Shown here: piece by piece, positions 3,001-62,782 of the stretch
Position numbering within the stretch: position 1 is the first letter of the stretch
Layout: each line of letters opens with the position of its first letter
Source of the DNA: Andalucia godoyi And28
Lineage: Eukaryota > Protista > Jakobida
Direction: 5' to 3'
DNA length: 64,000 nt
NCBI GenBank assembly: GCA_009859145.1
Contig: VRVR01000018.1
Coordinates: 303,923-367,922, forward strand
Program-made: the position numbers and the translations under genes
The notes under the pieces: model-generated
The model's database searches: none
The model's input: only the letters and a program-made list of their open reading frames with translations
What the model was told of the DNA's origin: nothing

Positions 3001-6000
3001 CGCTCTTACTGTGTCCAGCGCTGTGCAGGACGAGTGGAATCGATGGATTGAATTGACAGATGCAGATCCAACGTCGGAACTGTTTCTTCGGTTCGATCCG
3101 TCTGTCCGATCTCTGTGCAGTAATTCGTTTTCCTGCGTCCTGTCACTGGATCGGCGAGTCAAAAGGGGAGATGTCGCTGTTCCATTGAACCGGGAAATCA
3201 CGGGAGACTATTTCTTGGGTGCTCCGACATATGCCAAATCTTGGATTCTCGACCCTGCCGGTATTAGAAACTTCTCCGTTCTTCCGGATATTTGGATGGC
3301 CGAAATCGTAAGTTTTCATGCTGCGCCAGTACCTTTCAGGAACACCATCGTTTACGGACCTGACGCCGGTGATGTCGAGCAACTGAATCATGTGAGCGAT
3401 TTGTTCACCCGTGCGGAGTTCTATGCAGACGGTGGTCTTGTACAGGAAACAGTCGCCTTCGACAACGTGATTGCTGTCGGCTCGTTAATGCAGGTTGAGG
3501 ATTGCTGGATTTCCAGATTCCATCCACTCGGAGCAACCGTCAAATTCCGAGTCACGTCGAAATCCTCCACGATGAGTCTGCCTGCAAACATGACTGTCAC
3601 GATGTCACAGTTGAGCGCTCCGACCGCCAATGCGATGCTATTCAACCCTTCAACCTCCTTTTTGTCCATTCTGGACTCGCAGTTCAATTACGGATTCGAC
3701 ATCTCGTTTCTGATGTCTGTCGATGAGTATGCATTGTCCGTTAAGCCGTTCTCACCTTCCCCAGCGATTTCCGTGTGTCCCGGTGTTATCAAAGTTGGAC
3801 GGCAGTCGCTGACAGTGCTCCCCTCATTGTTGGATGCTTCTTCGTTACGGAGGATTTCTTTGCGCATCCAGGGGTTCAAGTCGTCGGATGTGAATGCGCT
3901 GCCGTCTGGACTGGCGTGCGTGTTTAATGCGCTTCAGCAGCAAAATTCTTCCGCAGTTTGGGACAGTAGTTTGGGTGTTGTCAATTGTTCCGTCCCCGTT
4001 TCTGTTGCCGCCGGCAGTGTGAATGTGATTTTGCAGAATGGGACTATTGAATTGGGTTCTGGAAATTTCAGTATCTCCAATGTCGCGACGTTTTCTGCTG
4101 CATCCGTGGACGTGAATGCGACCTTTATTCGGATTTCCTTCTCTTCTCCCACCAATATGCCTTCCTCTCCTGATTGTTCACTCCTTTTGCTCCTGGCATC
4201 TCGCCTGACTTTGGGTGAAAGGACTGGCTTGCAGTGCTCATGGCAGGATGCGTCGAACTTGGTGATTCAGCTTGGGCAGCTGGTTGTGTGGAACAAAGAT
4301 GATCCGTTTTTCAATATTTCGATAGTCCCCGGGTCCATTCGAGATGGCACCGATGTGACAGCAGCGGCGCAGATTCCAACTTTGATTCGGCTTCCGTTCT
4401 CTCCTCCGTTGCCGATGTTCCAAATCTCTCCCAGTCAAGCCGTTGTGAACATTTGTGACGCCTTTTCCCTCTCTGCAGTACTGGTTTCCGGAGGTTTGAA
4501 CCGGGCGGTGAGCAGCACTTGGAGGTTGTTGTCCACGTCCATGACTGGATTCAACCAGTCTTTGCCGTATCCCGTGTCCAGCAGTTTGGAAGTGTCACTG
4601 GGTGACCCCTTTCGACTTCCAGGATCTTTCGTATTTGAATTCACGGGAGTGAACGCGTTTGGATATCAGTTCCGCGCAACGGTGAATGTGACGAGACGTT
4701 CCAACGAAATAACGAGTGCCAGCATAGTGGGTCCGAGTCCTGCAACAGTTCGCATTTCGCAAGCTTTGACTTTGAATTCTCTTGTTGCGTCCGCCTCCTG
4801 TCTTTCTTCGCTGGGCTTCTCAGTAGACTATGAATGGAACATCTCGGGATCGACGTTGTCTGCTGTTGCAATCGGAAAGGCTGCATCTGCAAAGGGGCTG
4901 TCGTCGATCGTGTTCCCTGGGTTTGCGTTCGTTTCGGGGAACAATTACAGTGTTTCACTGCGAGTGAAGACTGTTCCGTTCCTGTCGTCCGCATTGCTTG
5001 CCGAGTTCCAATTCTCTGCATTTGCGCTGCCATTGTCTGCGGTTGTGGACCAAGGCTCCTTTGTGGAGCAAGGAGTGGCCAGCCCACTGCGACTTTCGAG
5101 TCTGGGTTCTGTTGATCCGGACAACGAGCCTGGAATCACTCCCACCTTCTTGTGGTCTTGCCTGCGGTTTGCGAACTCCACTGCAGCGAAACTCAGAGAC
5201 GAATCCCAAGGAGCTGTCTGCTCAGAGATCTCTTCCGTTGCCAAGACTGCTTCCGTTTTAGACATCCCAGCCAAAGTTCTCCAGGTCTCCTTTTCGTATG
5301 TATTTGCGATAACGTACTCGAAGGGCTCGCGCTCTTCGACGTCCTCGATTGTCGTGTTTACAAAGTCCGGAAATCCGCCGCTTGTGCGCATTTCCCAGCC
5401 GGTGACGAAGGTGTCTGCAGCCGAAAAGGTTGTGGTGACCGCGGAGGTCTCGTCTCCTGATCCACGTCCTCAAATTCAGTGGCAGTTTGTTTCGGGATCA
5501 CCGTCGTTTGATCTAACCAACAGTTCGCTAATTCTTTCGTCTGACAAGTCCGCCAACCTTGTGATCGCCCCCGGAATTCTTGTTTCTGGCCAAACTTATT
5601 CGTTTGAAGTTGTCGTCACAGATCAATGGGGTGCGAACTCGTCCGCATTCCGGAATGTCATCGTCAACACTCCACCAGCAGGTGGGTCTTGCTCCGTTAT
5701 TCCCGACTCCGGGTTCGAACTGGAAACGGAATTTACGCTGTCATGCTCCGGTTGGTCGGATGAAGATGCTCCAATCCAGTATGATGTTTATCTGGTGAAC
5801 AGGGTTGATCTTTCTGTCGTTGCGCTTCCTCTCACTGTCGAGGACCCGAACCGTGTGATACTGCTTCCGAACCAACTCATCTATAATACTCCAAAGATGA
5901 TTTTGCCTCCGTCAAAAAGCTCCACAGGAAATATGACGTTGCTGTTCAACATCAGAGATTCATTCCGATCGTCTGTTTTGGTATCTGCGAACGTCAAGGT

Positions 6001-10765: not shown

Positions 10766-10837
<72 letters not shown>
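10766..10837. repeat. (AG)36 microsatellite in the divergent SBDS / membrane-protein intergenic region
   Basis: Direct reading of the sequence. Confidence 0.98.
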
Positions 10838-14860: not shown

Positions 14861-14933
14861 TGCCCCATCGTCTAGTTGGTTAGGACATAAGACTCTGAAT
14901 CTTAGGGCCACGGTTCGAATCCGTGTGGGGCAA
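14861..14933 (+). tRNA. tRNA-Gln(CUG), copy 1
   Basis: Acceptor stem TGCCCCA/TGGGGCA. D arm GTCT-AGTTGGTT-AGGAC. Anticodon arm TAAGA-CT CTG AA-TCTTA. T arm CACGG-TTCGAAT-CCGTG. T-run terminator downstream. Confidence 0.96.

Positions 14934-20397: not shown

Positions 20398-20435
<38 letters not shown>
20398..20435. repeat. (GT)19 microsatellite in the RAD6 5' leader region
   Basis: Direct reading of the sequence. Confidence 0.95.
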
Positions 20436-20959: not shown

Positions 20960-23900
20960 ATGACTGGCAGACGGACCCGAGTCCTTCTGGAAATCTTGAC
21001 GGTGGCTTTGCTGGTTCCACTCCTGGTTGCTGCAGATCCTACAGTTGATTTTGTAAGCTGTTCCAGCAGTGCAACTGTGCAGGACACGTCGATGTGCTCC
21101 ACGGACGGGTCTTCGTCCATGTACATATTTGGATCGAACTTTGGCAATGATTCGACGGTTGTGGAGATTACAGTGGACGGGACAGTTTTGGTCGACCCTG
21201 ACATTGCATCGGTTTCAGACACTCTGCTGGAAATACAGCTTCCTGCAGGCCCCACTAATGCAGCGCCAACTGTGGAAGTCAGCGTGGGAGGAGTGCTAAG
21301 CACAGCGGTATCCTTTACGTATGCAGTTCCGGTAATATCTTCAGCTGTGTGTTCTTCTGGAGGATCGACTTGTCCTACGTCAGAGTCTGGGCTGACGATT
21401 CACGGTGTGAATTTTGGAAATACTGCGTCTGGGTCTTTGATTGTGCTCTCATCTGCATCAGGAACAATATCGGCAGTTTCTTGTCAGACGGATTCGCACA
21501 CGCTAATCACATGCGGGGCGTTTGAGGGTGCCGGGACGGCCGTGGCGGTGAGCCTTACAAGGGCAGTCGATTCTGCCCAGGCGACGAAGAATGCAGCGTT
21601 TTCGTTTAAACTACCAGTTGTTAGTTCTTACTCCTGCGATCCAAAGTGCAGTACAGACGGCTCTGCCGCGATAACAATCTCCGGATCCGACTTTTCGCAG
21701 ACTCTCGACAATGTCGACTACGTGAAGGTGTCCGGGGTGGATTGCAAGACCTCTGGGATCACGGCAGTCTCGGGGCACAATCGACTGGTATGCCAGCTGC
21801 CAGCCGGACCTGGGGCGGTGAACGACATTGTCGTCAGAATTGGGGGCCAGACATCTGCTTCTGTTGACTTTACATACGCTGCAGTGCAGATTTCAGATGC
21901 ATTCTGCACTGCGGTTGGAGGTCGCTGTCATACATCCGGCGACACCCTCACGATCCGCGGAAGCGATTTAGGAAAAGGGACACCCGCTGGAACAATTACT
22001 CTTCCTGGAGCGCTTGTTGGAGGACACCCGACCGCCTGCACCGTCACCGACTCGACTCACACGGAAATCCACTGCTCGGGGTTTGTCGGTGCAGGATCAG
22101 GCGTCGACGTCTCGATCACAAGGTCCTACGAAGACGACAGTGCAGCGACCAGTGCATCAAAGCTTGCAGCGTTTTCTTTCTTCTCGCCCGTTCTGCTCTC
22201 GTACGAATGCAAAACGGCTGGCGGATCGTCGACGGATCCCACGGCGGCCAATCCGCACTGCACCACTGATGGAGCAGCCACGATCACTCTGAAAGGAACA
22301 GATTTTGGCCCGGCAGTCGCAAACTTGGAGCACGTCTTCATTGACGGCGAGGAGTGCTTGGGCCTGACAGCAAACGGCTTGCCGACGGTTTCTGCTGGAC
22401 ATGATAAGATTGTGTGCAACCTGCCTGCGGGGACAGCAGCCTCTGCACCGCAGCTGATTGACGTTCAGATTGGCGGTCAGGCACTGGGCTCATCCGTTGT
22501 CTTTTCATATTCTGCCCCTACAATAACAGCAGCCACGTGCGGCGCAGGTGCTGGCCTGTGCGACACTTCTGGAGACACGATCACCATCTTGGGCACCAAT
22601 TTTGGAAGGCGAGCGCCTCGCATTACTCTTTCTGACACATCCAGTGGAAACAACTATGTTCAACTGGATCCCAGTTTTCCAGGCACGGCGGCGATATCTT
22701 CCAGTGCCCATGACTGCCACGTAGATGGTACACACACGCAGATAACGTGCAAAAACTTCAAAGGTGCCGGAGCTTCCGTGACCGTAGTGCTGAATCGGGC
22801 TGATGGGACAACTGCCTCCGGAACGATGGGATTCCGAGCGCCTGCCATTTCCTCCTATTCCTGCTCGACGGATCCCACCAAGATGGGAGACAACAACTGC
22901 GGAACGGATGGCACGGCTACCGTGACGCTGGTCGGTACTGGATTCCCGCACACTGTTCAAAATCTGGATGAAGTCACATTCGGAAATGTCGGAACGCAGC
23001 ACAGCTGTCGCTCAACGGCAGTGATCCTGTCAGACACCAGTCTGGAGTGCGTTCTTCCGGAGGGACCCGAGATCGGACCCAATACAGCATCCGTGGAAGT
23101 TGGATTGCAGACCACTGCTTCCCCCGCACCCTTTTCGTATGCGAGGCCCTCTATCTCCGCTGCGAACTGCAATGGCGGCGTCTGCAAGACCGTGTCGGAC
23201 ACCATCACGCTGACTGGCAGAAACTTCGGCAAACATATCCCAGCTACCGGGAGTGGTGCAAGCATTCAGTTGTCTTCCGGCACCTACGCATTTATCGATC
23301 CATCATCATGCCAGAGCACTGCTCTCGGAAAGCACTTCGGCCTCACATGCTCCGGGTTTGAAGGAGCCGGAGTGGACATCAATGTGCTGTTGTCCCGAGC
23401 TGACGCAGCTTCCGTTCAGCGAAACAGATCCTTTTCATTCATTCCTCCAGTGGTTACCGCTTACTGGTGCTCCACCGGCTCGAACGGACCTGTTATCTTA
23501 CAGGGCTCTGGTGCAATCACCGATCCGCAGCGATTTTCGTTCTGTAGAACCGACGGGACTGCAGTCATCACGTTCTACGGTCAAAACTTTGGATTCCACG
23601 CGGGGCATGTCGACACGATTTCCGTCGGAGGGCAGAGCTGCTCGGGGTCTGTGTCTCGGGTTGTGGACGCAGCCGACCCCGAGTACACCCACAAACATGT
23701 GACGTGCACACTGCCGGAGCAAGCAGTGTCTCAGGGCACTGCAACGCTGAACCAGGATCTCGTGATGACAGTTGGGAGCCAGCTGACCACACTTGCAGGC
23801 GCATTCCAGTACAGACCTCCCACAATTCTCGGGACGTTTTGCGGGGGGTCTTCAGCATTCGGCCACTTTGCCGCGAATGCGTATGATTTGACAGTTGCAC

Positions 23901-25792
23901 CGGGCCAGCGATGCAGGACGATTTCAGATACGCTGACGATCATCGGGGACGATTTCGGACCGTCCAATGCGACTGTATGGCTCTCTCGATCTGGCATTAT
24001 TTATTCGCTGGGGACAAGCAATCTTTCTTGTTCACATGATGCGCATACTTCTACCACGCGCCATCAGATTATGTACTGCACATCATTATGGGGCGTTGGC
24101 ATCAATGTGGACGTCTCCCTGCGCCGTGCCGATACGAAATCATTCAGCTTTCCGAGCGGCTTTTCTTTTGCAGCACCAGTGATACAGTCCTACAACTGTT
24201 CGTCGAGTGGTGTTTCCGGCTCCTTGTCTTCGTGCGACACGCACAACTCTACGATCACTGTGCTCGGCGCAAATTTGCCAGTCGTGATGTCGGATCTTCA
24301 GTCGCTTTCGTTCGGCGGGCTCCGATGCGATAGCCAGCAAGGAAGCATTCCCAACTGGGCATTCATGGACGGAAACCATAATATGAATCAGTCTGCGCGG
24401 ATAATCGCGTCGCATTCTGCAGTCACATGCCGATTGCCCATACAGTCCGGGACCAAGAACATCGAGATTACGGTTGCCGATCAGTCGTCTGCACCGTTTT
24501 CGTTCCAGTACTCGCCTCCCCAAGTTTTCAACTACTCTTGTTCGTATTCGGACGGCTGGGACGAGGGCAGCTGGAAAAAAGGGATCTGCGGGACCCACGA
24601 CACGGTGGTCACATTAAGGGGAGTCAATTTTGGCAGAGGAGACGAGACCCTTGATATCACCATCGGCGGGCTAGTGTGCGCTCTGCATGGAACTCGGCAC
24701 GTCGTTCCGCTGGATTATCCCACGGAGCACTTTATTTCGTATTGTCGGGCCCCCGAGCAGACGGGAGCAAATCTGACCATTTTAGTGGCCGCGAGTGGTC
24801 AAACTGGCCCTCCCTTGAACGCATTTACCTATTCACAGCCCGTTCTTCGAGCAGTAAGTTGTTCTGGGAGACCGGAGGCGGGTCTCGCGTCGTGGTGCGG
24901 GTCGGAGGGCACTACTTTAACGGTCCTCGGAGATCACTTCGGGAACGATCCACAGCTGCTGACCATGAACATTTCCAACAAGATTGGCAGTGCCACGGCC
25001 ACGAACTTTTCCGACTGCATTGTTGGGCAATCCGACTGCGGTCCCTACGTTTGTACGTCCCTCCAGCTGGAACGATACCAGCCCTCTCGATCCCCTTATT
25101 CTGCTCTGGGACATTTCGCATTCTCGTGCATCATCGATCATGGCTATGGAGCCAACATGGAAGCCGCAGTGACTCTTCGTGGTCAGACGGTCGTCCTCCC
25201 GTTCCGGTTTGATCAAGAGCCGTACACGACCAACGCTCGGAAAAGCAACGAGGAGGACTTTCTGTTCGTTGACACTCTCGACGGGGGCGATATCGTGGCG
25301 TCGGCCGTCGACATGACGCGGGCCTTGTTGTTTGCAGGCTACAGTCGATCGTCGACCATTCACACCTTTGAGCCGAGTGTTCCGTACACAGCAGCGACCT
25401 TGGAAGCTGCAAAGGACATTGTTGGGTTCCAGATCAACGCGTCGATCGCTCTGTTTCATACTCTGAACAGCCAGAACCCGGCGTTGCCAGTGGACTTGTG
25501 TTTCCTGCAGATCACTGACCGCTCTTCGTGGCCGTCCTCGCGGGAGCTGAACTACCAAACTCTTCTCTATGCAGCCTCTTTGCTGTCCTCCCACTCCACG
25601 GACACGTATCCTCGATGCACCACCGTTGGGCTGCTCATGGACTGGGAAGTTTGGAAGTCTGCATTTGGCGATCCGCGCCACGACGAAATGTACAACGGAA
25701 CCTTTGCTCTCCGTCAGCATCCGGTTTTTGTGCTGTCTCAAGACGAAATACTGCGGAAAGAAGAGCATTTTCCTTTTGAGCTTCTTGATTGA
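20960..25792 (+). CDS. Secreted protein with ~13 Cys-containing IPT/TIG domains and a C-terminal degenerate GH25 lysozyme-like domain (1610 aa)
   Basis: Signal peptide (VLLEILTVALLVPLLVAA). Repeated P-x-I-x-S...C..TxG..ITIxGxNFG...C.LP.G...V.V.G...FxY units. C-terminal LCFLQITDRSSWPSS...N...VGLLMDWEVWKSAFG. No TM or clear GPI signal. Confidence 0.85.
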   Translation: MTGRRTRVLLEILTVALLVPLLVAADPTVDFVSCSSSATVQDTSMCSTDGSSSMYIFGSNFGNDSTVVEITVDGTVLVDPDIASVSDTLLEIQLPAGPTNAAPTVEVSVGGVLSTAVSFTYAVPVISSAVCSSGGSTCPTSESGLTIHGVNFGNTASGSLIVLSSASGTISAVSCQTDSHTLITCGAFEGAGTAVAVSLTRAVDSAQATKNAAFSFKLPVVSSYSCDPKCSTDGSAAITISGSDFSQTLDNVDYVKVSGVDCKTSGITAVSGHNRLVCQLPAGPGAVNDIVVRIGGQTSASVDFTYAAVQISDAFCTAVGGRCHTSGDTLTIRGSDLGKGTPAGTITLPGALVGGHPTACTVTDSTHTEIHCSGFVGAGSGVDVSITRSYEDDSAATSASKLAAFSFFSPVLLSYECKTAGGSSTDPTAANPHCTTDGAATITLKGTDFGPAVANLEHVFIDGEECLGLTANGLPTVSAGHDKIVCNLPAGTAASAPQLIDVQIGGQALGSSVVFSYSAPTITAATCGAGAGLCDTSGDTITILGTNFGRRAPRITLSDTSSGNNYVQLDPSFPGTAAISSSAHDCHVDGTHTQITCKNFKGAGASVTVVLNRADGTTASGTMGFRAPAISSYSCSTDPTKMGDNNCGTDGTATVTLVGTGFPHTVQNLDEVTFGNVGTQHSCRSTAVILSDTSLECVLPEGPEIGPNTASVEVGLQTTASPAPFSYARPSISAANCNGGVCKTVSDTITLTGRNFGKHIPATGSGASIQLSSGTYAFIDPSSCQSTALGKHFGLTCSGFEGAGVDINVLLSRADAASVQRNRSFSFIPPVVTAYWCSTGSNGPVILQGSGAITDPQRFSFCRTDGTAVITFYGQNFGFHAGHVDTISVGGQSCSGSVSRVVDAADPEYTHKHVTCTLPEQAVSQGTATLNQDLVMTVGSQLTTLAGAFQYRPPTILGTFCGGSSAFGHFAANAYDLTVAPGQRCRTISDTLTIIGDDFGPSNATVWLSRSGIIYSLGTSNLSCSHDAHTSTTRHQIMYCTSLWGVGINVDVSLRRADTKSFSFPSGFSFAAPVIQSYNCSSSGVSGSLSSCDTHNSTITVLGANLPVVMSDLQSLSFGGLRCDSQQGSIPNWAFMDGNHNMNQSARIIASHSAVTCRLPIQSGTKNIEITVADQSSAPFSFQYSPPQVFNYSCSYSDGWDEGSWKKGICGTHDTVVTLRGVNFGRGDETLDITIGGLVCALHGTRHVVPLDYPTEHFISYCRAPEQTGANLTILVAASGQTGPPLNAFTYSQPVLRAVSCSGRPEAGLASWCGSEGTTLTVLGDHFGNDPQLLTMNISNKIGSATATNFSDCIVGQSDCGPYVCTSLQLERYQPSRSPYSALGHFAFSCIIDHGYGANMEAAVTLRGQTVVLPFRFDQEPYTTNARKSNEEDFLFVDTLDGGDIVASAVDMTRALLFAGYSRSSTIHTFEPSVPYTAATLEAAKDIVGFQINASIALFHTLNSQNPALPVDLCFLQITDRSSWPSSRELNYQTLLYAASLLSSHSTDTYPRCTTVGLLMDWEVWKSAFGDPRHDEMYNGTFALRQHPVFVLSQDEILRKEEHFPFELLD

Positions 25793-27571: not shown

Positions 27572-27572
<1 letters not shown>

Positions 27573-27636
<64 letters not shown>
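27573..27636. repeat. (CTGT)16 tetranucleotide microsatellite
   Basis: Direct reading of the sequence. Confidence 0.95.
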
Positions 27637-33697: not shown

Positions 33698-33770
33698 TTG
33701 CCCCACACGGATTCGAACCGTGGCCCTAAGATTCAGAGTCTTATGTCCTAACCAACTAGACGATGGGGCA
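33698..33770 (-). tRNA. tRNA-Gln(CUG), copy 2, identical to copy 1 and inverted
   Basis: The reverse complement matches 14861-14933 base for base. Confidence 0.96.
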
Positions 33771-51977: not shown

Positions 51978-51998
51978 CCCCCCCCCCCCCCCCCCCCC
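51978..51998. repeat. C21 homopolymer
   Basis: Direct reading of the sequence. Confidence 0.95.
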
Positions 51999-52413: not shown

Positions 52414-55400
52414 CTACAACAAACCGAAGCAGACGATAGAAAACTCCACGTTGACACTGGACCAATCATACCATCCGTAGCTGGAATGCAGCATTCCGGC
52501 ATACATCTCTGTTGCAGTCTGGACTCGGACATTGATCGACAATCCTGCAGCATAGAATCCCGCCAAGCTGCAGACACAGCTGGGCACTTTCGAGTATGGA
52601 GCACCGAAATTGAATTGCAGCTGATACGACGACTGACCAGCAAAGACAAAATTGTATACAGAATACGTCACGAGAGAACCACCATTCCATCGGCCGCGAA
52701 ACACGGAGCTTCGGAAGAAGGACGACGCTTGGGAACCGTCTCCAAGGGAGGGAACAATCGAGAGCGGATACAGGTTTTGAAAGTACAGTGAGCCTTGAGC
52801 AAACATGTCTCCTTCAAAGCGGGAACTGCCTGCGACGTGCAACGAAGCTGTTGGACTTTGTGTGTTGATTCCAATTCTTACATCGGAAGTCACGCCCAGA
52901 ATCGTCAACGCAGACGCAAACTGGAGACTGCCGATCTTGCTTCCAATGGCGAACCGGACACCATTCGGTCCGTTGTACTGCTGCATCCGCAAATACGAAG
53001 AGTCTACCAGTACGCGCGACACAGATCCTCCATCGACGTACACGAGCCCGCGATCTTCGACGGTCGAGTCCTGCATTACATTTGCAGCCCCATTGACATG
53101 AAACTGCGCAGACGGTAAAGATGAATATGGAAATCCGATACCCACAACAGAAGATGGATACAGGAGGAATACGGATGTATACATTTGGAGAATCTTCGAG
53201 ATCTGGAGCCGCAGAAAGCTATCCGTAGAGGATATGAGAAACGAAGCGCCGTTGGAAGCATGAGAAAAGAACTGATTTGCAATGGCCGCATCATGAACAA
53301 CCACGGTCTGATCAGAAATGAGCATTCCTTGAACGGTTCCCTTGCCATTGATCTCCAAATTGAAATTTGGAAACAGAGTCCCGATGCCTACCAGTCCTGA
53401 TGATCCCAAAAAGAAATCAGGACGGGATGCTCCGAATGTATTCGCAGTGAATACTGTGTTCCGCGATTGCTGCTCGAACACAAAGGAGTCATATTGGGCA
53501 CCAGATCCAGCAATGTACGACACTGAAGTTCGCAGCAGTCTATACTCTTGTCCACTCGATGGTAGGAACAGCAGACAGGTTGGATCAGACGCAGTTATCT
53601 TGGAAAAGTACACTCCATTATCCACATCCACATCCGCAAAAATCTTCATGGCCCCAAAAACATCAAGTTGAGCGGTAGGAGGCGCTCCGGATCCCTTGAC
53701 GGCGACATATCCGCTGGGATACACAGAGAGTACTTCTGTACCTCCCGAGAAAAAGGAGATACACCCTGATGTACCAGTGTTTGTATTTCGTTTCTCGAAG
53801 AAGACGTCTCCGGAAGTGGATTGCGTGTGAATGATCCGAAATCCGGTTTCGGACGGAAAGGCATCCAATAGTACTCGTCCGTTAGTGGAATTTTGGAAAC
53901 TGACCGCTCCAAACAACGAAACCTCGGGCTGAAAGCTGGAGATACCGTGAAACGCAATCGGAGCTGACATCGATGTCTGGGTCAGGGGACCAGAAACGGA
54001 GACAGATCCTTGCGATGAGAGCAGCAAACTCGGAATTGAAGCAGGGTCGGAAGACACGAAGGCATGCCCACCGTTCAACATGTGATTGTCGAACAGTATA
54101 TTTCTGGCGGAATCTGTCGACACCGCAAGACTGAAAGATCTCGTGGAAATCAGTGGTCCACCACAGAGACTACATGCAGCAGCGGATCTTACGTCCACAG
54201 TCGATTTTGCATAGAATACGGACTCCGAGCCCCTGACTTGCAGCGATCCAGCAACTGCGAAGTCATGCACTGTCCACGAGGATGGCGCCGCCGTATTGCC
54301 AATAAAAACGGACCCGTTGGCTGCCGACATTCGTAAAGTGTTTCCATACAGCAAGGAAGTGCCATCCACATTGATCTTGGCATTGTTGAGGAACACGGCT
54401 GATGCAATAGTCAATTTCCGCGAAGCAGTCAACGAAGTTCCGCCAAACGAAACTTCTCCTTCTTCGGATATAGTCATGGGAGCCGAGTAGAAAGCGCGAG
54501 GAGAAGAGCAAAAGGACCATAGGCTTGAAACATTGAGGCAATCGGAGCTGAACACAATGGACGATATGTTCAACCGAATGGTTGTCGAGGACAGCTGAAC
54601 ATCGTTGGAGTTCAGCGTCACGAAATGAGATGAAGACATTGAAACAGACAGCTGTCCGTGTACGGTGGAGATGCCACGTATGTCTACGCGAAACTCCGCA
54701 GTTAAACTCCCCCCTGTGAGATTCACGGAGCCGCTAACGACATTCGGAGCACTATTGCTGAACGACCCGGATGAGTTTAGTGAATGCATTGTGATGCCCC
54801 GTAAGACGTCTGCCGAGCCGTACAAAAACGAATTATTCAGCAGCGTCACGCTTCCCGAAGAAGACAGTGACGCATTTCCGAATACGGAACCATGAATAAA
54901 TGCATTCGGAGCAACGGCAATTCTGCTTTTCGTCTGCAGATCTCCCGCTACGATCCCACGCTCTTCGGCCAAAAGATTCGTTTTTAACATCACGGAAACG
55001 GTGGCCAAAGACGAAGTGGACAAATCGCCAGGAGAGAGTACACGAGATTGCACGGATGTGAGATTTCCCGCAGCAAGGACTGTACCAACACTAACACTGC
55101 TGTGCAAACTTGAGAGAGAAGACACGAATAAGGAGCCAACATGAGCTCTGTTAGCGTACTCGACGGATCTGGATATATTAAGAAATGGAGACAACAGCTG
55201 GTTCGTCCAGCTGCTGCAGTTCATCGAGGATGTGCAAATTGCCACGGGACCATCAGCGATGTTGAAAGAATCCAAGAAAGAAACGACAGAAGCAGCGATG
55301 TTACCTTGCTGAGCAAAAAGCTCGTCAGCCATTACATCGCCGTGAACGGACAGCAATGTTCCCACAGACACCATCGCATGGGAAACAAGCACTTGAGACC

Positions 55401-57765
55401 CAAATGTACCGCTGATGACGGCCTCGCCTGTCACAAACACGCTAGATGGCCCCACGACACTTGAGCACAGAAGCGGTGGTGAAATGCTCAACGTGGATGC
55501 AGATATATTGGAGGAAACGGTCAAGGACTGGGTAGACAAATATCCGCATGTAGTTGATCCACTGACACTTAGAGAGCCAATGCTGGCGTTCACGATCGAA
55601 AGACGAAAGTCTGTGTTTAATTCCATGCCAGTCGAAAAAGCAAAGTTTTGTGCTGCAAGAACTGCAGAGCCTCCGGCACAAGTAACGTCTCCGAAGGTTG
55701 CGATTCCTGAAACGTGCCCAACGTGCACAGACATGTTGGCAGTCTGCAGTGTCGAAACCACAGAACGCACTGACCCATCTAAGATAAGGGTGTCAGTGGA
55801 AGTGTCAGAAGCGACGGTATTCGTACCTCTCGCGACAAAAGTATGAGAAACAACTGCCCCTCTGACCACGATGCCAGAAGCTCCAACCGAGGAACTTACC
55901 GAAACAGCACCACCCACTTGGGTTGCAAAGGAAAGCACGTGTGCGGCCGACATGTTTGCAGTGCCGTAAAGAAACAGAGAAGAAAGCGCCCGAATCTCGA
56001 GGAAGCCGTACGAATGGAGGAGAATGTTGTTGCGAAGTGTAAAGTTGGCGACAGACATGACGGACAAGTGAGAAGAATTCACATTGTGAATCAGTGCTTT
56101 GTGTATCCACAATGCACTTGTCGCATTTGGTGCCAGCTGGCCCAAGGAAACGAAGAAACAAGAGCGAAGGACCGATATGTTGTGAGAAACAGACAGTGAT
56201 GAAGATCGCATCAAGTCCGCAGAAGTGTTGCTTGTTATAGACATTTGTCCAGAACCCGACAAAATCATTAAATTCAGATTCTGACAGCTGACGTTCCCCA
56301 AAACGAGGATGTCTGTGAACAAACAACTGCTACACTGAGAATGCACAGATCCGGAAGTTCCCACATGATCTGCAACCCGCAAGTTGGAAAATGTATTGGG
56401 TATGGTGGACGCATTGAATACGGCGCTGCCCTGCACCACAAGACTGCATGCGGTGTTGGAAGAAGCCCCCGAGATCATAAATTTCTCGGAAGTCAAAGAA
56501 GAGGCTGAAAAAAGACTGCATGAAATTGAAGCGCTCTCTGTGGCAGCGAGGACATCAATATCTGTTCGATTCGCGCTTCGCGCATCTAAAAAAGACAAAC
56601 TGTCAGAACGATCTATGAACAGAAACGACGCAGATAAATTGGAAAAAACTTGCAAATGCTGAAGCTGAGACGGAAACTTCGGAGACGGGCTCGAAGCCAC
56701 AGCCAGGAAGGGTGTAGTCAACTGGCCAATAACGAGCATGGAATGCGATGCGAAAAAGGAAGTGCACGTCAAGGACCCGCCGTCAAAGGAAGAAGAATTT
56801 GTCAGCACGTCGCGAGAAATGGCGGTAGAAGATGCAACGCTTGTTTCATTGGAAAGAAAGACGAACGCAGTGGCACAAAACTCGTCGGCAATGAGTGACA
56901 AGCTGGAGATGTTGCCTGTGATTGAAATATTCCCAGTACGCACATCTGCATCTGTTAGCTCCAGGCTTTCCAAGCTGGATGTCGAACCTACCACGAGCGA
57001 TTCTGAAATGTTGAAAACCGATGAATTCGCGAACATGTCTCCACCAACAGTGACGTTGCCCAGCGACACGTCCTTTGAAACCTCCAAACATTGATTCACG
57101 ATCACGTGTGAGGCAGTAACATTCGCATCACCATTCCAAGAGCGCGCATACCATGGTCCATCGGAATGACCATCACGAACACGCATGTCATTCGCAATTG
57201 TTAGTGTCGTCTCTCCACGAACTGACAAACTGCGGATGCATGCACTCTCAACAGACGACGCAAACGTGGTGAACTGGCCACGAACCTCGCTGGATATCGC
57301 AAGGACTGCATCGTTGAACACAAACAAGTCCCCGCCAATCGTCCCCACCGGTACGGCGAAGTGGGTACCAAGCGAATTCACAATATTCAAGTTGGTCAGC
57401 GACATAGCACCAGCGTTAATGTCGCCGGATAACAAGGCCGAGGACGCGGCAAGGCGATGCAACTCTGTATTCCCATCAATGGAAAGAGATCCATAAGTAT
57501 CAAACGTGTCGGACACGAATCGTCCACCAACTCGAGCACCATCCGTTGAAAGCACACTGCGGATTTCCAAGCTGCGAAACGACGCCGGGCCAAGAGAATT
57601 CAGATCGTTTGCAATAGTATGCCCTGAAACAGAGACGTCACTATTCCATTCCTTTTGCACAAGTACATACAAACAAACGAAGCTGGCGCAGACGATTAGC
57701 AACAGCAAAACCGAAAGCACGCTGACCAGTCGACGAAATCGTTTGTGCCAGTTGACCAGCCGCAT
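52414..57765 (-). CDS. Type II membrane protein with long beta-rich stalk, four VGIG(T)-P-L-V-G tail-fibre-type repeats and a tail-fibre-like C-terminal tip (1783 aa)
   Basis: ATG at 57765, then basic HKRFRR and one TM (LVSVLSVLLLLIVCASFVCLYVLV). About 1250 aa Ser/Val/Gly-rich stalk. Repeats VAVKGSGAPPTAQLDVFG, VGIGTLFPNFNLEING, VGIGFPYSSLPSAQFHVNG, IGINTQSPTASLHVAG. Terminal YQLQFNFGAPYSKVPSCVCS...FSIVCFG. Confidence 0.8.
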   Translation of the reverse strand: MRLVNWHKRFRRLVSVLSVLLLLIVCASFVCLYVLVQKEWNSDVSVSGHTIANDLNSLGPASFRSLEIRSVLSTDGARVGGRFVSDTFDTYGSLSIDGNTELHRLAASSALLSGDINAGAMSLTNLNIVNSLGTHFAVPVGTIGGDLFVFNDAVLAISSEVRGQFTTFASSVESACIRSLSVRGETTLTIANDMRVRDGHSDGPWYARSWNGDANVTASHVIVNQCLEVSKDVSLGNVTVGGDMFANSSVFNISESLVVGSTSSLESLELTDADVRTGNISITGNISSLSLIADEFCATAFVFLSNETSVASSTAISRDVLTNSSSFDGGSLTCTSFFASHSMLVIGQLTTPFLAVASSPSPKFPSQLQHLQVFSNLSASFLFIDRSDSLSFLDARSANRTDIDVLAATESASISCSLFSASSLTSEKFMISGASSNTACSLVVQGSAVFNASTIPNTFSNLRVADHVGTSGSVHSQCSSCLFTDILVLGNVSCQNLNLMILSGSGQMSITSNTSADLMRSSSLSVSHNISVLRSCFFVSLGQLAPNATSALWIHKALIHNVNSSHLSVMSVANFTLRNNILLHSYGFLEIRALSSLFLYGTANMSAAHVLSFATQVGGAVSVSSSVGASGIVVRGAVVSHTFVARGTNTVASDTSTDTLILDGSVRSVVSTLQTANMSVHVGHVSGIATFGDVTCAGGSAVLAAQNFAFSTGMELNTDFRLSIVNASIGSLSVSGSTTCGYLSTQSLTVSSNISASTLSISPPLLCSSVVGPSSVFVTGEAVISGTFGSQVLVSHAMVSVGTLLSVHGDVMADELFAQQGNIAASVVSFLDSFNIADGPVAICTSSMNCSSWTNQLLSPFLNISRSVEYANRAHVGSLFVSSLSSLHSSVSVGTVLAAGNLTSVQSRVLSPGDLSTSSLATVSVMLKTNLLAEERGIVAGDLQTKSRIAVAPNAFIHGSVFGNASLSSSGSVTLLNNSFLYGSADVLRGITMHSLNSSGSFSNSAPNVVSGSVNLTGGSLTAEFRVDIRGISTVHGQLSVSMSSSHFVTLNSNDVQLSSTTIRLNISSIVFSSDCLNVSSLWSFCSSPRAFYSAPMTISEEGEVSFGGTSLTASRKLTIASAVFLNNAKINVDGTSLLYGNTLRMSAANGSVFIGNTAAPSSWTVHDFAVAGSLQVRGSESVFYAKSTVDVRSAAACSLCGGPLISTRSFSLAVSTDSARNILFDNHMLNGGHAFVSSDPASIPSLLLSSQGSVSVSGPLTQTSMSAPIAFHGISSFQPEVSLFGAVSFQNSTNGRVLLDAFPSETGFRIIHTQSTSGDVFFEKRNTNTGTSGCISFFSGGTEVLSVYPSGYVAVKGSGAPPTAQLDVFGAMKIFADVDVDNGVYFSKITASDPTCLLFLPSSGQEYRLLRTSVSYIAGSGAQYDSFVFEQQSRNTVFTANTFGASRPDFFLGSSGLVGIGTLFPNFNLEINGKGTVQGMLISDQTVVVHDAAIANQFFSHASNGASFLISSTDSFLRLQISKILQMYTSVFLLYPSSVVGIGFPYSSLPSAQFHVNGAANVMQDSTVEDRGLVYVDGGSVSRVLVDSSYLRMQQYNGPNGVRFAIGSKIGSLQFASALTILGVTSDVRIGINTQSPTASLHVAGSSRFEGDMFAQGSLYFQNLYPLSIVPSLGDGSQASSFFRSSVFRGRWNGGSLVTYSVYNFVFAGQSSYQLQFNFGAPYSKVPSCVCSLAGFYAAGLSINVRVQTATEMYAGMLHSSYGWYDWSSVNVEFSIVCFGLL

Positions 57766-58064
57766 CAGAGAACGCAAACACACACACACACACACACCAA
57801 GAAATGCGGTTCCTGGTTGGAATGACTTGTAACAGACCACCAGACCAATAGAAGGGGATTATGATTCCTGCCGATGCAAACCTATTTTTTTGATGATCGC
57901 AACACGAAAACGCTTTCTTCTAAAACGGCGTGATGTTGTCGAAACTCGAAAAGCAGCAGGGTGACAAAACGCTGGGATATGTTGCTTGCACCAACCTATC
58001 CTTCGCAATCAACGAGCACCGACTTTGTTTGCGTGCATTGTTCTGGGGCACAAACTTGTCCGTT

Positions 58065-58069
58065 TCTCT

Positions 58070-58157
<88 letters not shown>
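58065..58157. repeat. Compound microsatellite (TC)n-(TG)26-(TC)12-(TG)n
   Basis: Direct reading of the sequence. Confidence 0.95.
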
Positions 58158-58915
58158 AGCACACGCCATTGCCAATCAACAATCAATACAATATCCGCTC
58201 GACTGAAAACAGAGAATGAAGGATCGAGAGAGAGAATGAACAAGGGGATTAAAAATGCGGAATGGCTCAAATGAAACTCGTTGAAATCCCTAGTTTCCTG
58301 GTTCCCAAAGTCCAAACGGTTTCTAATGAATGCATTAATTAATCCATTCGAGAGCTCTGACGAAAGAACAAGTTGTTTCTGTTTTGGGGTGCGGACACCC
58401 ACGAATGTCCCACTCAAAAAGAGAAACTCGTGTGATGCGCTGATGCGGATTGTAAAAGTCACTTTACGCCAAATAATCTGTTTTTGATGCACAGCATGCG
58501 AGACAAATGTTTGGGAGAGGTTTTGGGTTGGAAGGTAATTCCCTAGAACAAACCCACAACAACGCTCGAGTATGCTGGGGAATCGAGTTCCGTGAGCCGT
58601 CGTACATAACCAGTGAGTGTAACCGGAGGAGGCAAAAAAAAAAAAAGAGAGAAACTTCGGCCGCACGCGGGGTTTGGAGACAGTGAATGTTTGAGAAAGC
58701 CGACTTTCGCGTGACAAACGAGAATCTTCTATTGAGAATATATCTCATTATGTTTGTTTATTTATTTTATTTTTTGTTATTGCTATCATCATTATCATTA
58801 CCACTGGCATTATCACTGATATTTACATTCATATTGTTGTTGTTATTGCTATTGCTGTGTGTGGATCGGTCTGGGTGTTCGATTTCTGAAAGGCGAGCTG
58901 TGTGTTCCTCGGCGA

Positions 58916-61900
58916 ATGATACCCAGTTTGGTTCTTTCCCTGGTGCTGGTGTTGCTTCTTCCTTCGGTGTCTCTTCTACTGGTGAGCGGCACGGAACCAA
59001 ATGTTGTCTTCGACGGGAAAATAGGATTGCTTCCTCGAGCGGTCGTGGAGCAGGTTTCTCGAGATGTGTTTGGACAGTCTCTGCAGCGAGTGGATGATTC
59101 TAGTTTCGTGCTGCAGGCGACTGTCGGAAACGCGAGTTGGTGGGCCGAACTGGAGCCGAGGCTGCAGCCAACGGTGTTTTTGATGTTGAAGGACAGTATT
59201 CTTGGCTTTGCTGGAGGCTTGATTTTCCAGTTCCAACGAGATTCGTTTGAAGATTCAACCGCATTTGCAGAGACAATGCCAGCAAACGAGGGAGTTGCAT
59301 TGATGAATGTTGCAGGCGATGTTGCAGGAGAGGCTCTTGATACGGAAGTGGAGCTCGCTGTATACAGACCTCAACCGAGGGAGACGTCTCTTGATCAAAT
59401 CATTGCCAGAAGCCAGCATTCACTGAGGCAACGCATGCGGAACCGAGTGCATTACAGCCACGAATTGCATCACGGGCACCGAATGCATCATAGACACACG
59501 CGGGAATTTGAAGTACAGAAACTTTTGCTTGCGAATGAAGGCGTCGACAAGACTGCTTCGGACGCTTTCAACGTTCGCTCGTATGCCCCAGACTGTGCAG
59601 TGCTTGCAGATTTATATTTGAGTACCAATGGATCCAACTGGCAGCCGATCAACTGGGGACAGTCTTTGCCCGAGGAGTTCTTGTCCTCGTGTTGCTCTCT
59701 GCCGCTCTACGGTTATGCATGTGATTCATCCGGAAGGGTTGCAGCTTTGGATTTAAGTGCGAATCAGCTGATAGGATCGATTCCACCGTCGCTCGGCAAC
59801 CTGTCGCATCTTCAATTCCTCGATTTGTTCTCCAACCAGTTGACCGGATCGATTCCAAGTTTGGGATTGCAGCTTCAATTCTTGATTCTGTCTTCGAACA
59901 GGCTGGAAGGGTCGATTCCGGAATCTCTTGGCAACCTAGTGCTGCTGCAGTACTTGGATCTGGACTCAAATGAACTGTCCGGGACGATACCTGACTCTCT
60001 TGGGAGACTAACGGAGCTCGTGTATTTGGATCTGGATTCCAACAACCTTGATGGTTCGATTCCGCCATCTCTGGGCAACCTCCGGAAGCTTCAGCAATTG
60101 TACCTCTTTTCAAACCAATTGACTGGGCCAATTCCGGATACATTTGGAAATCTAACACAGCTTCAAATTTTATATCTATTTTCCAACCAGTTGAGCGGTT
60201 CGATTCCCATATCCCTGGGCAACCTGCAAGAAATTCAGGAACTGTATCTCTTTTCAAACCAATTGACTGGATCAATTCCGGATACATTTGGAAATCTGAC
60301 ACAGCTTCAAGATTTGTACCTCTTCGCCAACCAGTTGACCGGCTCGATTCCAGCGTCTCTGGGAAATTTGACAATGCTGGAGGCTTTCCTGCTGAACAAC
60401 AACGAACTTTCTGGAGAACTGAGCTGCGGATCTCTGGGCCCAAGTTTGACGACCCTGAATCTGCAAGGAAATGCTCTCGTTGGACCCATCCCGTCATGTT
60501 TTTGTAGTCAGAATGGCTTGCAGTTCGCGTTTTTGGGTAACAACAATTTTACTTCGTTCCCTAACTGCTCGTTGTCCTCTGTAATTTTATTGGATCTTTC
60601 CAGCAACCGAATTTCGTCATTTCCTTTCTCCATGATATCCGGGTTCTCCGGGTTGGTTACTTTGGATCTAAGTTACAATCAGTTTACGGGAAAGTTCCCC
60701 TTGAATGTTTTCGTCGGTCGCTCAGCTCTTCGATCGCTCTCACTTGCGTACAATATGTTCGTTGACAATTTTCCATTGTACTTATGCAACTATGTTTCAG
60801 ACACTGGAATCGTCATGAACACTGAGTCAAAGCTGAAAACCATCGATCTTTCTGGAAACACAATTACTGGAGTTCCCGGAATCATGGACTACAGCAATGT
60901 CAATTGTGAAATCTGCAGCAATTTCTTGTATTACTCATTGACAACGCTGAACATGAGGGATACTAAAATGCCAGCGCTGTTCAGTCCGTTCTCGTACGAG
61001 GTGAACGGTACCAGTGTCTGTTCCATTCAGACGCTGTCATTCTTTGAGGTACTGCCATTCCTCAGTGGCCTGTCGGCTCTGGATGTCTCGTCGAACGATC
61101 TGGTCGTGGATCTTGATTTCGTGGTTGCCCTTCCTTTGTTATCGTCATTTGATATCAGAAAAAATCCGAATGCGCGTAAGTCATTGTTGTCGTACACAAA
61201 CCAGCAGCGATTCCTTTTCGATGCGAAGACCAATTATCCCTTCAGCACAAGCATGTCGTGTGTGCAATTCACAGTGGGTAAGCTGTCATTTGAAGCAGAT
61301 CCAGTGTTTTTTGACTATGAAAATTGTGTTTGTCGTCCTGGATTCTACGGCAAACCCCCGGGCTGCTTGCCTTGCTTTCCCAATGCCGATTGCTCGTTCC
61401 AAAGCGAATCTGATATTTCCTTCCGTAATCTTTCGATGGCATTCAGAGAAAGCGGCAACATTATTGCCCAACCTGGCTATTATGCATCTCCTTCTGTCAC
61501 ATTTGCAGAAATGATGAACAACCAGTCTTACCCAAAGTTGGTCGAAATCTGTTCGCACGCGGGAACGGATTTGACTCCGTGTCATGCCACGCGCTCCGGG
61601 GCGTGCAGATTGGGGTATGATGGACGACTGTGCTCCGCATGCTCCTCTGGCTATTTCCGAACTGGCGATCGCTGCGTGGAATGTCCAGACACTGTCGGGC
61701 TTGTTTTCTTTGCCATCTTTTTCTTCTTTGCTATTTTCTTACTGTTCGCGTGGTCGTTCTTTGTTGGTTCTTCATCTTCCGGTCTTGTCAAGGTACTTGT
61801 GTTCTTCTGGCAAGCACTGTTCTTCATTCGCACACCTATGTCCTCTGGATTGTATATTTTCACACATGGAACGTCGACAGCGACTGCGCTCTCTGTTGCT

Positions 61901-62782
61901 GGCCCAGAGTGTTTCTTCTCAACGTGGACGTATACTTCAAGTTACGTGGCGTCTGTCCTCTCTCCTTTCATTGTCGTGTTCATTGTCGTTTGCATCTGGA
62001 TTGTTGGAACTTTCAAAATGAAAGCGTCCGACGTCCAGCGCCGAAAGGCGTGGCTTGACCGATGTCGCCGATCGGCCATTTTCCTATTCCTACTTATGTT
62101 CATGTCCGCTATCTCTGCAGTCCTTTCGTCGCTGTCTTGTACCACTGATGCTGGTGACGGAAAGTCGTATCTGGTGTACTATCCCAACGAGAGATGTTCT
62201 CAAACGCTGCTGGCCGTCTCATCTTTTCTGCTCTTGCTGTACGCTCTTGTCATCCCTGGTGTGTTGTCTTTTCTTGTATGGCGCAGCGGAGTTCTCGCGA
62301 AGGATGCAAAATCCGATACACGAAGAATGTACGTATATTCACTGTTGTTTGGATCATATCTTCCAAATAGGAGATGGTGGGAACTCGTAGTAACGCTTCG
62401 ACGAATTTTATTTGTTGCTGCGTATGTTACGATTCCGCCTCTCTCGGAATACAGAACGATGTTGGTTGCAAGTGTGTTGGTGGGTGCAGCAACTGTTCAG
62501 GCAGTCGCAACCCCATACCTCCGCAAAGTTGAGAATTCGGTGGAAGTTGCGTCGCTTGGGATTCTCCTGGTCAATCTTGTATGTTCCGTTCAATCGCAAG
62601 TCCTTGCAGTGCGAGATGTTGACGGCGCAGGAACGATTGTGTTTCTCATGAACATTGGATTTTCCGCGATTCTGGTTGGGATGCTGCTGTCTCATTTCGG
62701 AAGACGGTGGCGGAAGCACATCAGCCTTGGAGGTGATGCGGTTCTTACCGAAAACCTGCTGGAGACGAATGGAGCACTGTAG
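58916..62782 (+). CDS. LRR receptor-like protein: signal peptide, N-terminal extension, plant-type 24-aa LRRs, Cys-rich region, ~7 TM (1288 aa)
   Basis: Signal peptide MIPSLVLSLVLVLLLPSVSLLLVSG. LRRNT (LADLYLSTNGSNW...CC..LYGYACD). LxxLxxLxLxxNxLxGxIPxxLGNL repeats. CVCRPGFY...C; CRLGYDGRLCSAC..GY. TM block with KVLVFFWQ and FGSY...WWELV..LRR. Confidence 0.92.
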   Translation: MIPSLVLSLVLVLLLPSVSLLLVSGTEPNVVFDGKIGLLPRAVVEQVSRDVFGQSLQRVDDSSFVLQATVGNASWWAELEPRLQPTVFLMLKDSILGFAGGLIFQFQRDSFEDSTAFAETMPANEGVALMNVAGDVAGEALDTEVELAVYRPQPRETSLDQIIARSQHSLRQRMRNRVHYSHELHHGHRMHHRHTREFEVQKLLLANEGVDKTASDAFNVRSYAPDCAVLADLYLSTNGSNWQPINWGQSLPEEFLSSCCSLPLYGYACDSSGRVAALDLSANQLIGSIPPSLGNLSHLQFLDLFSNQLTGSIPSLGLQLQFLILSSNRLEGSIPESLGNLVLLQYLDLDSNELSGTIPDSLGRLTELVYLDLDSNNLDGSIPPSLGNLRKLQQLYLFSNQLTGPIPDTFGNLTQLQILYLFSNQLSGSIPISLGNLQEIQELYLFSNQLTGSIPDTFGNLTQLQDLYLFANQLTGSIPASLGNLTMLEAFLLNNNELSGELSCGSLGPSLTTLNLQGNALVGPIPSCFCSQNGLQFAFLGNNNFTSFPNCSLSSVILLDLSSNRISSFPFSMISGFSGLVTLDLSYNQFTGKFPLNVFVGRSALRSLSLAYNMFVDNFPLYLCNYVSDTGIVMNTESKLKTIDLSGNTITGVPGIMDYSNVNCEICSNFLYYSLTTLNMRDTKMPALFSPFSYEVNGTSVCSIQTLSFFEVLPFLSGLSALDVSSNDLVVDLDFVVALPLLSSFDIRKNPNARKSLLSYTNQQRFLFDAKTNYPFSTSMSCVQFTVGKLSFEADPVFFDYENCVCRPGFYGKPPGCLPCFPNADCSFQSESDISFRNLSMAFRESGNIIAQPGYYASPSVTFAEMMNNQSYPKLVEICSHAGTDLTPCHATRSGACRLGYDGRLCSACSSGYFRTGDRCVECPDTVGLVFFAIFFFFAIFLLFAWSFFVGSSSSGLVKVLVFFWQALFFIRTPMSSGLYIFTHGTSTATALSVAGPECFFSTWTYTSSYVASVLSPFIVVFIVVCIWIVGTFKMKASDVQRRKAWLDRCRRSAIFLFLLMFMSAISAVLSSLSCTTDAGDGKSYLVYYPNERCSQTLLAVSSFLLLLYALVIPGVLSFLVWRSGVLAKDAKSDTRRMYVYSLLFGSYLPNRRWWELVVTLRRILFVAAYVTIPPLSEYRTMLVASVLVGAATVQAVATPYLRKVENSVEVASLGILLVNLVCSVQSQVLAVRDVDGAGTIVFLMNIGFSAILVGMLLSHFGRRWRKHISLGGDAVLTENLLETNGAL

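Follow-up and report, generated by a model that had tools for sequence, protein, structure and literature searches.

A candidate membrane-anchored trimeric surface fiber with phage- and bacterial-type modules and a family-specific tip in the protist Andalucia godoyi

Could a protist display, anchored in its own membrane, a fiber of the kind that phages and bacteria use to recognize their targets? Trimeric beta-helical fibers with exchangeable tips are a standard means of target recognition in phages, contractile injection systems and predatory bacteria, and the eukaryotic form of their module is known mainly from MYRF, in which it serves as an intracellular device for trimerization and self-cleavage. 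The question is raised by one gene of the jakobid Andalucia godoyi And28, located in the 64,000-nucleotide stretch that we analyzed (hereafter the window; positions 303,923 to 367,922 of contig VRVR01000018.1, assembly GCA_009859145.1). The gene occupies window positions 52414..57765 on the minus strand, to which all coordinates within it refer, and consists of a single exon encoding 1783 amino acids plus a stop. An earlier interpretation made from the DNA letters alone (the sequence-only reading) had proposed that its product is a membrane-anchored protein resembling a phage tail fiber. The module has more recently been reported in giant alveolate glycofibril proteins (bioRxiv 10.1101/2025.09.30.679562). 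Our analysis supports homology of the distal part of the A. godoyi protein to such fibers and leads us to a model in which the protein would form a type II-anchored, glycan-coated fiber at the cell surface.

The gene model itself is sound. The minus-strand open reading frame 57840..52414 is uninterrupted and its first ATG, at 57765, gives the 1783-residue product, which agrees with the earlier claim that the frame contains no stop or intron. A look-up of protein clusters found the identical 1783-residue product in EukProt, and the gene is thus an annotated single-exon eukaryotic gene model. The product is rich in serine (17.7%), valine (9.9%) and leucine (9.8%), high in glycine and alanine, and low in lysine, glutamate and proline, a composition that suggests a folded beta-rich protein rather than a disordered mucin.

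The case for a fiber begins at residues 1341-1660 (52786..53745), where four capping-loop motifs, profile matches to the PDB and hhalign alignments delimit a series of beta-helix modules resembling those of mosaic adhesive trimeric (MAT) fibers. The sequence-only reading had placed four spaced motifs in this part of the gene, and we located all four at overlapping positions, two of them strong and two weak. We scored them with a hidden Markov model (HMM) trained on 302 examples of the motif taken from unrelated proteins of prokaryotes and phages, for which the top score in 200 shuffles was 3.7 bits. The strongest is motif 4 (residues 1629-1646, 52828..52881; 32.6 bits), which aligns with both capping loops of Bd3182 and with the last loop of Bd2133, two fiber proteins of Bdellovibrio bacteriovorus. 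Motif 2 (residues 1457-1474, 53344..53397; 22.2 bits) can be aligned both to Bd2133 and to the MYRF stalk. The two weak copies are motif 1 (residues 1352-1371, 53653..53712; 4.1 bits), whose counterpart in the Bd2133 construct is the first capping loop, and motif 3 (residues 1540-1558, 53092..53148; 6.2 bits), which is aligned by hhalign. A regular expression for the motif, expected 0.0015 times in shuffled sequence, matched three of the four copies. Successive motifs are separated by 105, 83 and 89 residues, in agreement with the ~96 residues between the capping loops of Bd3182 (PMC10769870). Further upstream, the proximal part of the family-conserved C-terminal region (residues 1091-1340, 53746..54495) was delimited by alignment with the relatives described below; up to three degenerate capping-loop-like copies can be made out between residues ~1093 and ~1275, visible only through this alignment and individually not significant.

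Comparisons beyond the motif point in the same direction. A profile (A1) made from the alignment of the A. godoyi protein with its family relatives was searched against the PDB and matched Bd3182 (8OJN/8ONB/8ONC) with E=2.3e-6, covering both capping loops, and Bd2133 (8OND) with E=9.3e-6. In Bd2133 the match takes in a stretch of 150 residues, equal to one whole beta-helix domain between two loops, and it also reaches over the last loop and the linker before the tip. The ICA-stalk structure of MYRF (7DC3) was matched weakly, at motif 2 (E=0.047). In an hhalign comparison, A1 aligned with six prokaryote and metagenome segments (A4) over 209 columns that keep three successive modules in register, at 98.8% probability and E=6e-17, a score somewhat inflated in that the segments were picked from matches of the same query family. 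Homology of residues ~1340-1680 to the capping-loop beta-helix modules of phage and bacterial trimeric fibers is supported by these alignments. The Bdellovibrio modules are intertwined trimeric beta-helices (PMC10769870), and because homologous modules fold only as intertwined trimers, we infer that the A. godoyi protein trimerizes.

How widely is this protein shared? An exhaustive HMMER search with its C-terminal 650 residues against 1.84 billion representative proteins identified only two true relatives, so that the family comprises three clusters among those representatives. One is the cluster containing P0002, a 701-residue C-terminal fragment from a JGI metagenome (E=2e-81), and P0064, of 761 residues; the other is P0003, a full-length protein of 2160 residues from a Logan assembly (E=6e-31). 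The three members align over ~720 residues, at 31% and 24% identity to the A. godoyi protein, and have in common the modules, a linker, a tip with two invariant cysteines and an equivalent C-terminus. In P0003, where the anchor can be confirmed (P0002 and P0064 being fragments), a membrane anchor with juxtamembrane segment, a shaft rich in N-glycosylation sites, modules and tip follow one another in the same order, which argues against the architecture being a chance product of a single gene model. We found no paralog within the window and no close paralog in the protein collection.

The other ~60 HMMER matches share the repeated motif only, mostly in several stretches each. They include a Streptosporangium Peptidase_S74 "tail fiber domain-containing protein" and further S74 proteins, a protein on a phage-like Tara Oceans contig, and P0013/P0093 from the green alga Dolichomastix tenuilepis (MMETSP0033; E=1.3e-6). 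The two algal proteins have a signal peptide and all capping-loop modules in common, and their sequences diverge fully right after the last loop into tips of ~130 residues in one and ~210 residues, with an EGF-like cysteine pattern, in the other, as if tips had been swapped in this green alga. The gene for the motif-level match P0070 (3194-6493 on the marine metagenome contig L001, ERZ976285) lies in a block of 16 closely packed genes, all in one direction and nearly devoid of Pfam matches, an arrangement typical of a phage structural module. Word-indexed protein searches were crowded by low-complexity and motif-sharing candidates and returned the query itself, nothing, or motif-level matches. 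When collections of metagenome, viral and prokaryote genomes (the last comprising 185,579 genomes) were scanned by pattern, no family member came up; a tip-based scan of IMG/VR matched the capping loop only, and tblastn against GenBank phages found no family relative. Across these phage, IMG/VR, prokaryote and metagenome scans, neither the tip nor the family as a whole had a prokaryotic or viral relative.

Beyond the last module a linker (residues 1661-1680, 52726..52785; bounds approximate), placed by alignment with the stalk-like linker of Bd2133 and by the family alignment A3, leads to the tip (residues ~1681-1783, 52417..52725). The tip is conserved in P0064 and P0003, and its cysteines at residues 1730 and 1779 are the two that are invariant in all three family members. 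The C-terminal sequence quoted in the sequence-only reading is present, with its equivalent in both relatives. The tip has no relative in the PDB, GenBank phages or IMG/VR, and its single Pfam match is sub-threshold and attributable to chance; the weak matches to Ntox24 (E=0.014) and superoxide dismutase (E=1.9) are chance similarities. The A. godoyi protein has no match to Peptidase_S74 (PF13884) even at E<=10 and contains no S[DE]xxxK catalytic motif, so that we reject the presence of an S74 chaperone, as the sequence-only reading had done by eye, and autoproteolytic maturation would not be expected.

The opposite end of the protein has the features of a type II signal anchor, again as proposed earlier. 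Residues 1-11 (MRLVNWHKRFR; 57733..57765) form a putative cytoplasmic N-terminus with four basic residues, placing positive charge on the N-terminal side of the hydrophobic segment; a fifth, R12, is the first residue of that segment as delimited. Residues 12-36 (57658..57732) are the only hydrophobic stretch found in a Kyte-Doolittle scan. A BLASTP alignment of residues 8-102 with residues 90-192 of P0003 (E=2e-9) shows that the membrane segment and ~65 residues after it are common to both proteins; this conserved juxtamembrane part of the ectodomain spans residues 37-110 (57436..57657). Because the homologous segment of P0003 sits ~90 residues from its N-terminus, we interpret the hydrophobic stretch as an anchor and not a cleaved signal peptide.

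Between the juxtamembrane segment and the conserved C-terminal region lies a long shaft (residues 111-1090, 54496..57435) that is rich in serine, valine, leucine, glycine and alanine, poor in charged residues and proline, and rich in N-x-S/T sequons. Here one part of the sequence-only reading did not survive. It had described ~1250 residues of G/V/S/L-periodic beta repeats, and we reject such periodicity: self-BLAST of the 1783-residue protein revealed no internal repeats and hydropathy autocorrelation of the shaft region no repeat period, with only a weak short-range signal. Sequence searches of Pfam, PHROGs, NCBIfam and the PDB with the entire protein and with parts of it returned, besides the chance matches given above, nothing but a sub-threshold match to Bactofilin (E=0.025-0.09) in the shaft. 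The earlier fiber-like interpretation stands for the distal modules, whose homology to trimeric fibers is borne out by the PDB profile matches and hhalign, and is not supported for the first ~1050 residues, which have neither homologs nor repeats.

The distribution of sequons is informative about where the protein may reside. We compared observed counts with those expected from 2000 shuffles, in the shaft and in the distal ~480 residues. The shaft of the A. godoyi protein (residues 40-1300) contains 32 sequons versus 19.5 expected (P=0.0025), and that of P0003 contains 40 versus 15.7, a count reached in none of the 2000 shuffles. In the distal region (residues 1301-1783), by contrast, the A. 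godoyi protein has none versus 4.0 expected (P=0.013), and P0064 has none versus 7.2, with 0 of 2000 shuffles as low; P0003 has two versus 4.3, a depletion that is not significant. A distribution of this kind accords with an ectodomain routed through the eukaryotic secretory pathway, with the stalk sheathed in glycans and the distal modules and tip left bare, and it argues that the relatives of the A. godoyi protein are themselves eukaryotic.

Altogether, we favor, as the somewhat more probable account, a model in which the gene encodes a type II-anchored, glycan-coated, trimeric protist surface fiber that is MAT-like, lacks S74 and carries a new tip. We envision a single-pass protein with its N-terminus inside and its C-terminus outside that would assemble as a homotrimer on the cell surface. 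Proceeding outward from the membrane, the juxtamembrane segment would be followed by a beta-rich shaft of ~1000 residues that probably bears an N-glycan coat; three clearly defined triple-beta-helix modules of the type found in MAT and phage tail fibers, possibly preceded by further degenerate modules; a short linker; and a tip of ~100 residues, free of glycosylation sites, probably disulfide-bonded and unique to this small family. Folding independently, the tip could stand in for the S74 chaperone as a folding nucleus and at the same time present the distal binding surface. The N-terminal anchor would keep the fiber on the membrane with the tip at its far end, a polarity that would match that of phage fibers and MATs. 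For scale, Bd2133 has 370 residues and is ~14-15 nm long, and Bd3182 is ~55 nm long (PMC10769870); scaled from these two, the A. godoyi fiber would reach ~70-120 nm if its whole ectodomain were fibrous. The protein would be located at the surface, glycosylated, and engaged in adhesion or recognition, for which prey bacteria, a partner cell, a host or a substrate could be the target.

A bolder proposal, which we offer tentatively and place somewhat short of even, is that a protist lineage took receptor-binding fiber modules of the phage or bacterial type, made from them a trimeric recognition fiber that is anchored in the plasma membrane and sheathed in glycans, gave this fiber a new tip, and put it to its own use in recognizing prey, partners or hosts. 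A transmembrane-anchored fiber with an N-glycan sheath and a bare new tip would, if the model is correct, represent reuse of the module for recognition at the eukaryotic cell surface. The A. godoyi protein would then supply a tip domain without detectable relative and a concrete candidate for the unidentified protist surface fibers that act in feeding, mating and attachment.

The sequon-rich shaft, its length and the glycofibril precedent also invite a different account. Instead of a specific adhesin, the protein could be a component of a structural coat or hair, or else a glycofibril that is shed or secreted, supplying material for a glycocalyx, scale or extracellular matrix, with the tip acting as folding nucleus only. 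Trimeric triple-beta-helix glycofibrils have been described in alveolates (bioRxiv 10.1101/2025.09.30.679562), and shedding could take place at the conserved juxtamembrane segment. Several features of the protein fit such a role poorly. The sequon-free state of the distal ~480 residues in both the A. godoyi protein and P0064, and the tip being the best-defined family-specific domain, are what an exposed interaction surface would lead one to expect. No 12-residue or other glycofibril-type periodicity is present: lag-12 autocorrelation is not significant, so there is no dodecapeptide periodicity, and with neither internal repeats nor an ICA/S74 domain we reject a dodecapeptide glycofibril of the alveolate TLP-12 type. 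Finally, the gene is apparently single-copy and not part of an expanded structural family. We consider a coat or glycofibril role unlikely, while giving it more than passing weight.

Topology raises a second alternative. A type II protein has its C-terminus in the lumen of any secretory compartment, and the sequence carries no plasma-membrane signal, so the fiber might instead face the interior of the endoplasmic reticulum, a Golgi-derived vesicle, an extrusome or a food vacuole. The 11-residue cytoplasmic tail has no evident retention motif, however, and homologous fibers are all displayed outwards. An internal location thus appears improbable to us, and the preferred reading continues to be a fiber at the cell surface.

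A third alternative questions the fiber itself: the motifs could be relics, left in a beta-rich membrane protein that is monomeric and has ceased to form a trimeric fiber. Here the observations that weigh against the surface-fiber model must be taken together. Two of the four motifs, at 4.1 and 6.2 bits, barely exceed the shuffle maximum; the likeness to solved fibers consists mostly of short motifs and one stretch of ~150 residues; and the hhalign score is subject to the inflation mentioned above. AlphaFold2 monomer predictions gave no confident fold, with a predicted local distance difference test score (pLDDT) of 34 for the C-terminal 495 residues (from a 12-sequence alignment) and of 39 for the tip alone. 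Searches of Pfam, NCBIfam and the PDB revealed no recognizable fold in the first ~1050 residues. The weak motifs, the unconfident predictions and the lack of an S74 chaperone would all suit a relic. On the other side, three modules are in register with those of prokaryotic fibers, the motif spacing of 83-105 residues is that expected from Bd3182, relatives retain the modules at 24-31% identity, and non-S74 fibers trimerize without a chaperone. We judge the relic account decidedly improbable and retain the trimeric surface fiber as the working model.

Does the gene belong to the host? Flanking genes in the window encode core eukaryotic proteins (SBDS, TatD, cytosolic PheRS alpha, Josephin and ATG101) together with an M24 peptidase, a GMC oxidoreductase and a cyclic-nucleotide phosphodiesterase, and a gene for a CUE-domain protein lies directly downstream of the fiber gene. 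Relative synonymous codon usage in the fiber gene correlates with that of its pooled neighbors (r=0.75), and its GC content at third codon positions is 0.51, within the neighbor range of 0.51-0.61. A sequence scan located an (AC)10 microsatellite at 57778..57797, in the 5' leader 12 nucleotides upstream of the ATG, and similar microsatellites are present in the majority of the window's intergenic regions; the host-like leader and ordinary eukaryotic neighbors described in the sequence-only reading are thus both there. Terminal repeats around the fiber gene and integrase-like neighbors were looked for in the window and not found. Because codon usage and microsatellites are host-like, the neighbors are housekeeping genes and terminal repeats are absent, the fiber gene is a resident host gene and not a recent viral insert or contaminant. 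An endogenous viral element or bacterial or phage contamination, suggested by a module type that is commonest in phages and bacteria, is largely refuted and in our view barely credible, since the same contig carries core eukaryotic genes on either side of the fiber gene, its codon usage and the microsatellites match the host, terminal repeats and integrase-like neighbors are lacking, IMG/VR, GenBank phages and 185,579 prokaryote genomes yielded no family relative, and the sequons show a pattern typical of eukaryotic secretory-pathway proteins.

Other features of the window are recorded here in their own right. The upstream neighbor, divergent from the fiber gene (58859-62782, plus strand), encodes plant-type leucine-rich repeats, a cysteine-rich region (DUF7630) and a multi-pass membrane C-terminus; its leucine-rich repeats are encoded by 72/144-nucleotide tandem DNA repeats at 60053-60351. 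Long perfect intergenic microsatellites are present at 10766-10837 ((AG)36), 20398-20435 ((GT)19), 27572-27636 ((TCTG)16) and 58073-58149 ((TG)26(TC)12), and a run of 21 cytosines at 51978-51998 lies between the fiber gene and the downstream CUE-domain gene. Two further long reading frames are on the plus strand. The one at 20960-25792 encodes 1610 residues and includes four or more IPT/TIG domains (Pfam E=3e-47); TLP-IPT, another class of pond-water glycofibril, has a core of tandem IPT domains (CryoSeek preprint, bioRxiv 10.1101/2025.09.30.679562). The one at 23-8980, whose frame opens at base 23 after an upstream stop, encodes at least 2985 residues with a REJ domain (E=3e-50) and weak EGF- and PKD-like matches, and resembles a giant surface protein of the polycystin-1/REJ-like type. 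The window also has a pair of tRNA-Gln(CTG) genes with equal Rfam scores, at 14861-14933 (plus strand) and 33698-33770 (minus strand), 19 kb apart.

It remains to set the A. godoyi protein beside the systems that it resembles. With the S74 tail fibers and tailspikes of phages and bacteria (PF13884; Bd3182, 8OJN) it shares the capping-loop motif and the module, but it lacks their C-terminal chaperone-protease with its Ser-Lys dyad and falls outside the Peptidase_S74/ICA group. MYRF (7DC3; PMC3742443, PMC8326128) is likewise a eukaryotic membrane protein bearing a beta-helical stalk motif. In MYRF, a transcription factor, the stalk is cytosolic and is followed by an S74/ICA domain and a C-terminal anchor, whereas the modules of the A. 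godoyi protein would be lumenal or extracellular, an ICA domain is absent and the anchor is N-terminal.

The alveolate TLP-12 glycofibril candidates (bioRxiv 10.1101/2025.09.30.679562) are eukaryotic, extracellular, heavily glycosylated and trimeric, with beta-helices related to the folding modules of phage tailspikes. They are, however, proteins of ~20,000 residues composed of GSxxSx7 dodecapeptide repeats with a terminal ICA domain, whereas the A. godoyi protein has neither the periodicity nor the ICA domain and possesses a membrane anchor and a different tip. The Dolichomastix proteins P0013/P0093 resemble it in being secretory and in combining repeated capping-loop modules with variable C-terminal tips, and differ in having a cleavable-looking signal peptide, no anchor, no long shaft and unrelated tips. 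These cases bear on the novelty asserted in the sequence-only reading. The motif and its module are as such not new to eukaryotes, in view of MYRF, the alveolate ICA glycofibrils and the green-algal protein; what does hold is that we found no description, in open-access full text, of a transmembrane-anchored extracellular fiber of this type in eukaryotes. The A. godoyi protein, if the model is correct, would be the first one described and would found a very rare family.

The nearest counterparts are the MAT fibers of predatory bacteria. The Bdellovibrio study that defined the capping-loop consensus, and noted its presence in MYRF, divides MAT fibers into S74 and non-S74 subgroups (Caulton et al. 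2024; PMC10769870). Members of the non-S74 subgroup end in diverse, independently folding tips, among them new beta-sandwiches, TNF-like domains and C-type lectin domains; MAT fibers were shown on the predator surface, and one tip binds a prey glycan (PMC10769870). The A. godoyi protein shares with this family the repeated capping loop and homologous modules, and with its non-S74 subgroup a C-terminal tip other than S74, conserved over ~100 residues. As in Bd2133, beta-helix modules bounded by loops lead through a short linker to an unrelated C-terminal tip of ~100-120 residues in place of S74, and the N-terminus would be proximal to the cell and the tip distal. Unlike Bd2133, the protein is eukaryotic and begins with a transmembrane anchor instead of a signal peptide followed directly by the conserved, beta-rich MAT N-terminal domain of ~130 residues; the segment after the anchor is conserved in P0003 only and gave no match in Pfam, NCBIfam or the PDB, searches that did not include a direct comparison with the Bdellovibrio domain. 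It differs further in its sequon-rich shaft of ~1000 residues without homolog and in a tip unrelated to any solved MAT tip. Judged by its sequence, the A. godoyi protein would be closest in its workings to a non-S74 MAT fiber. Strictly speaking it stands outside the Bdellovibrio family, since a transmembrane anchor and a long shaft take the place of the N-terminal domain that defines that family.

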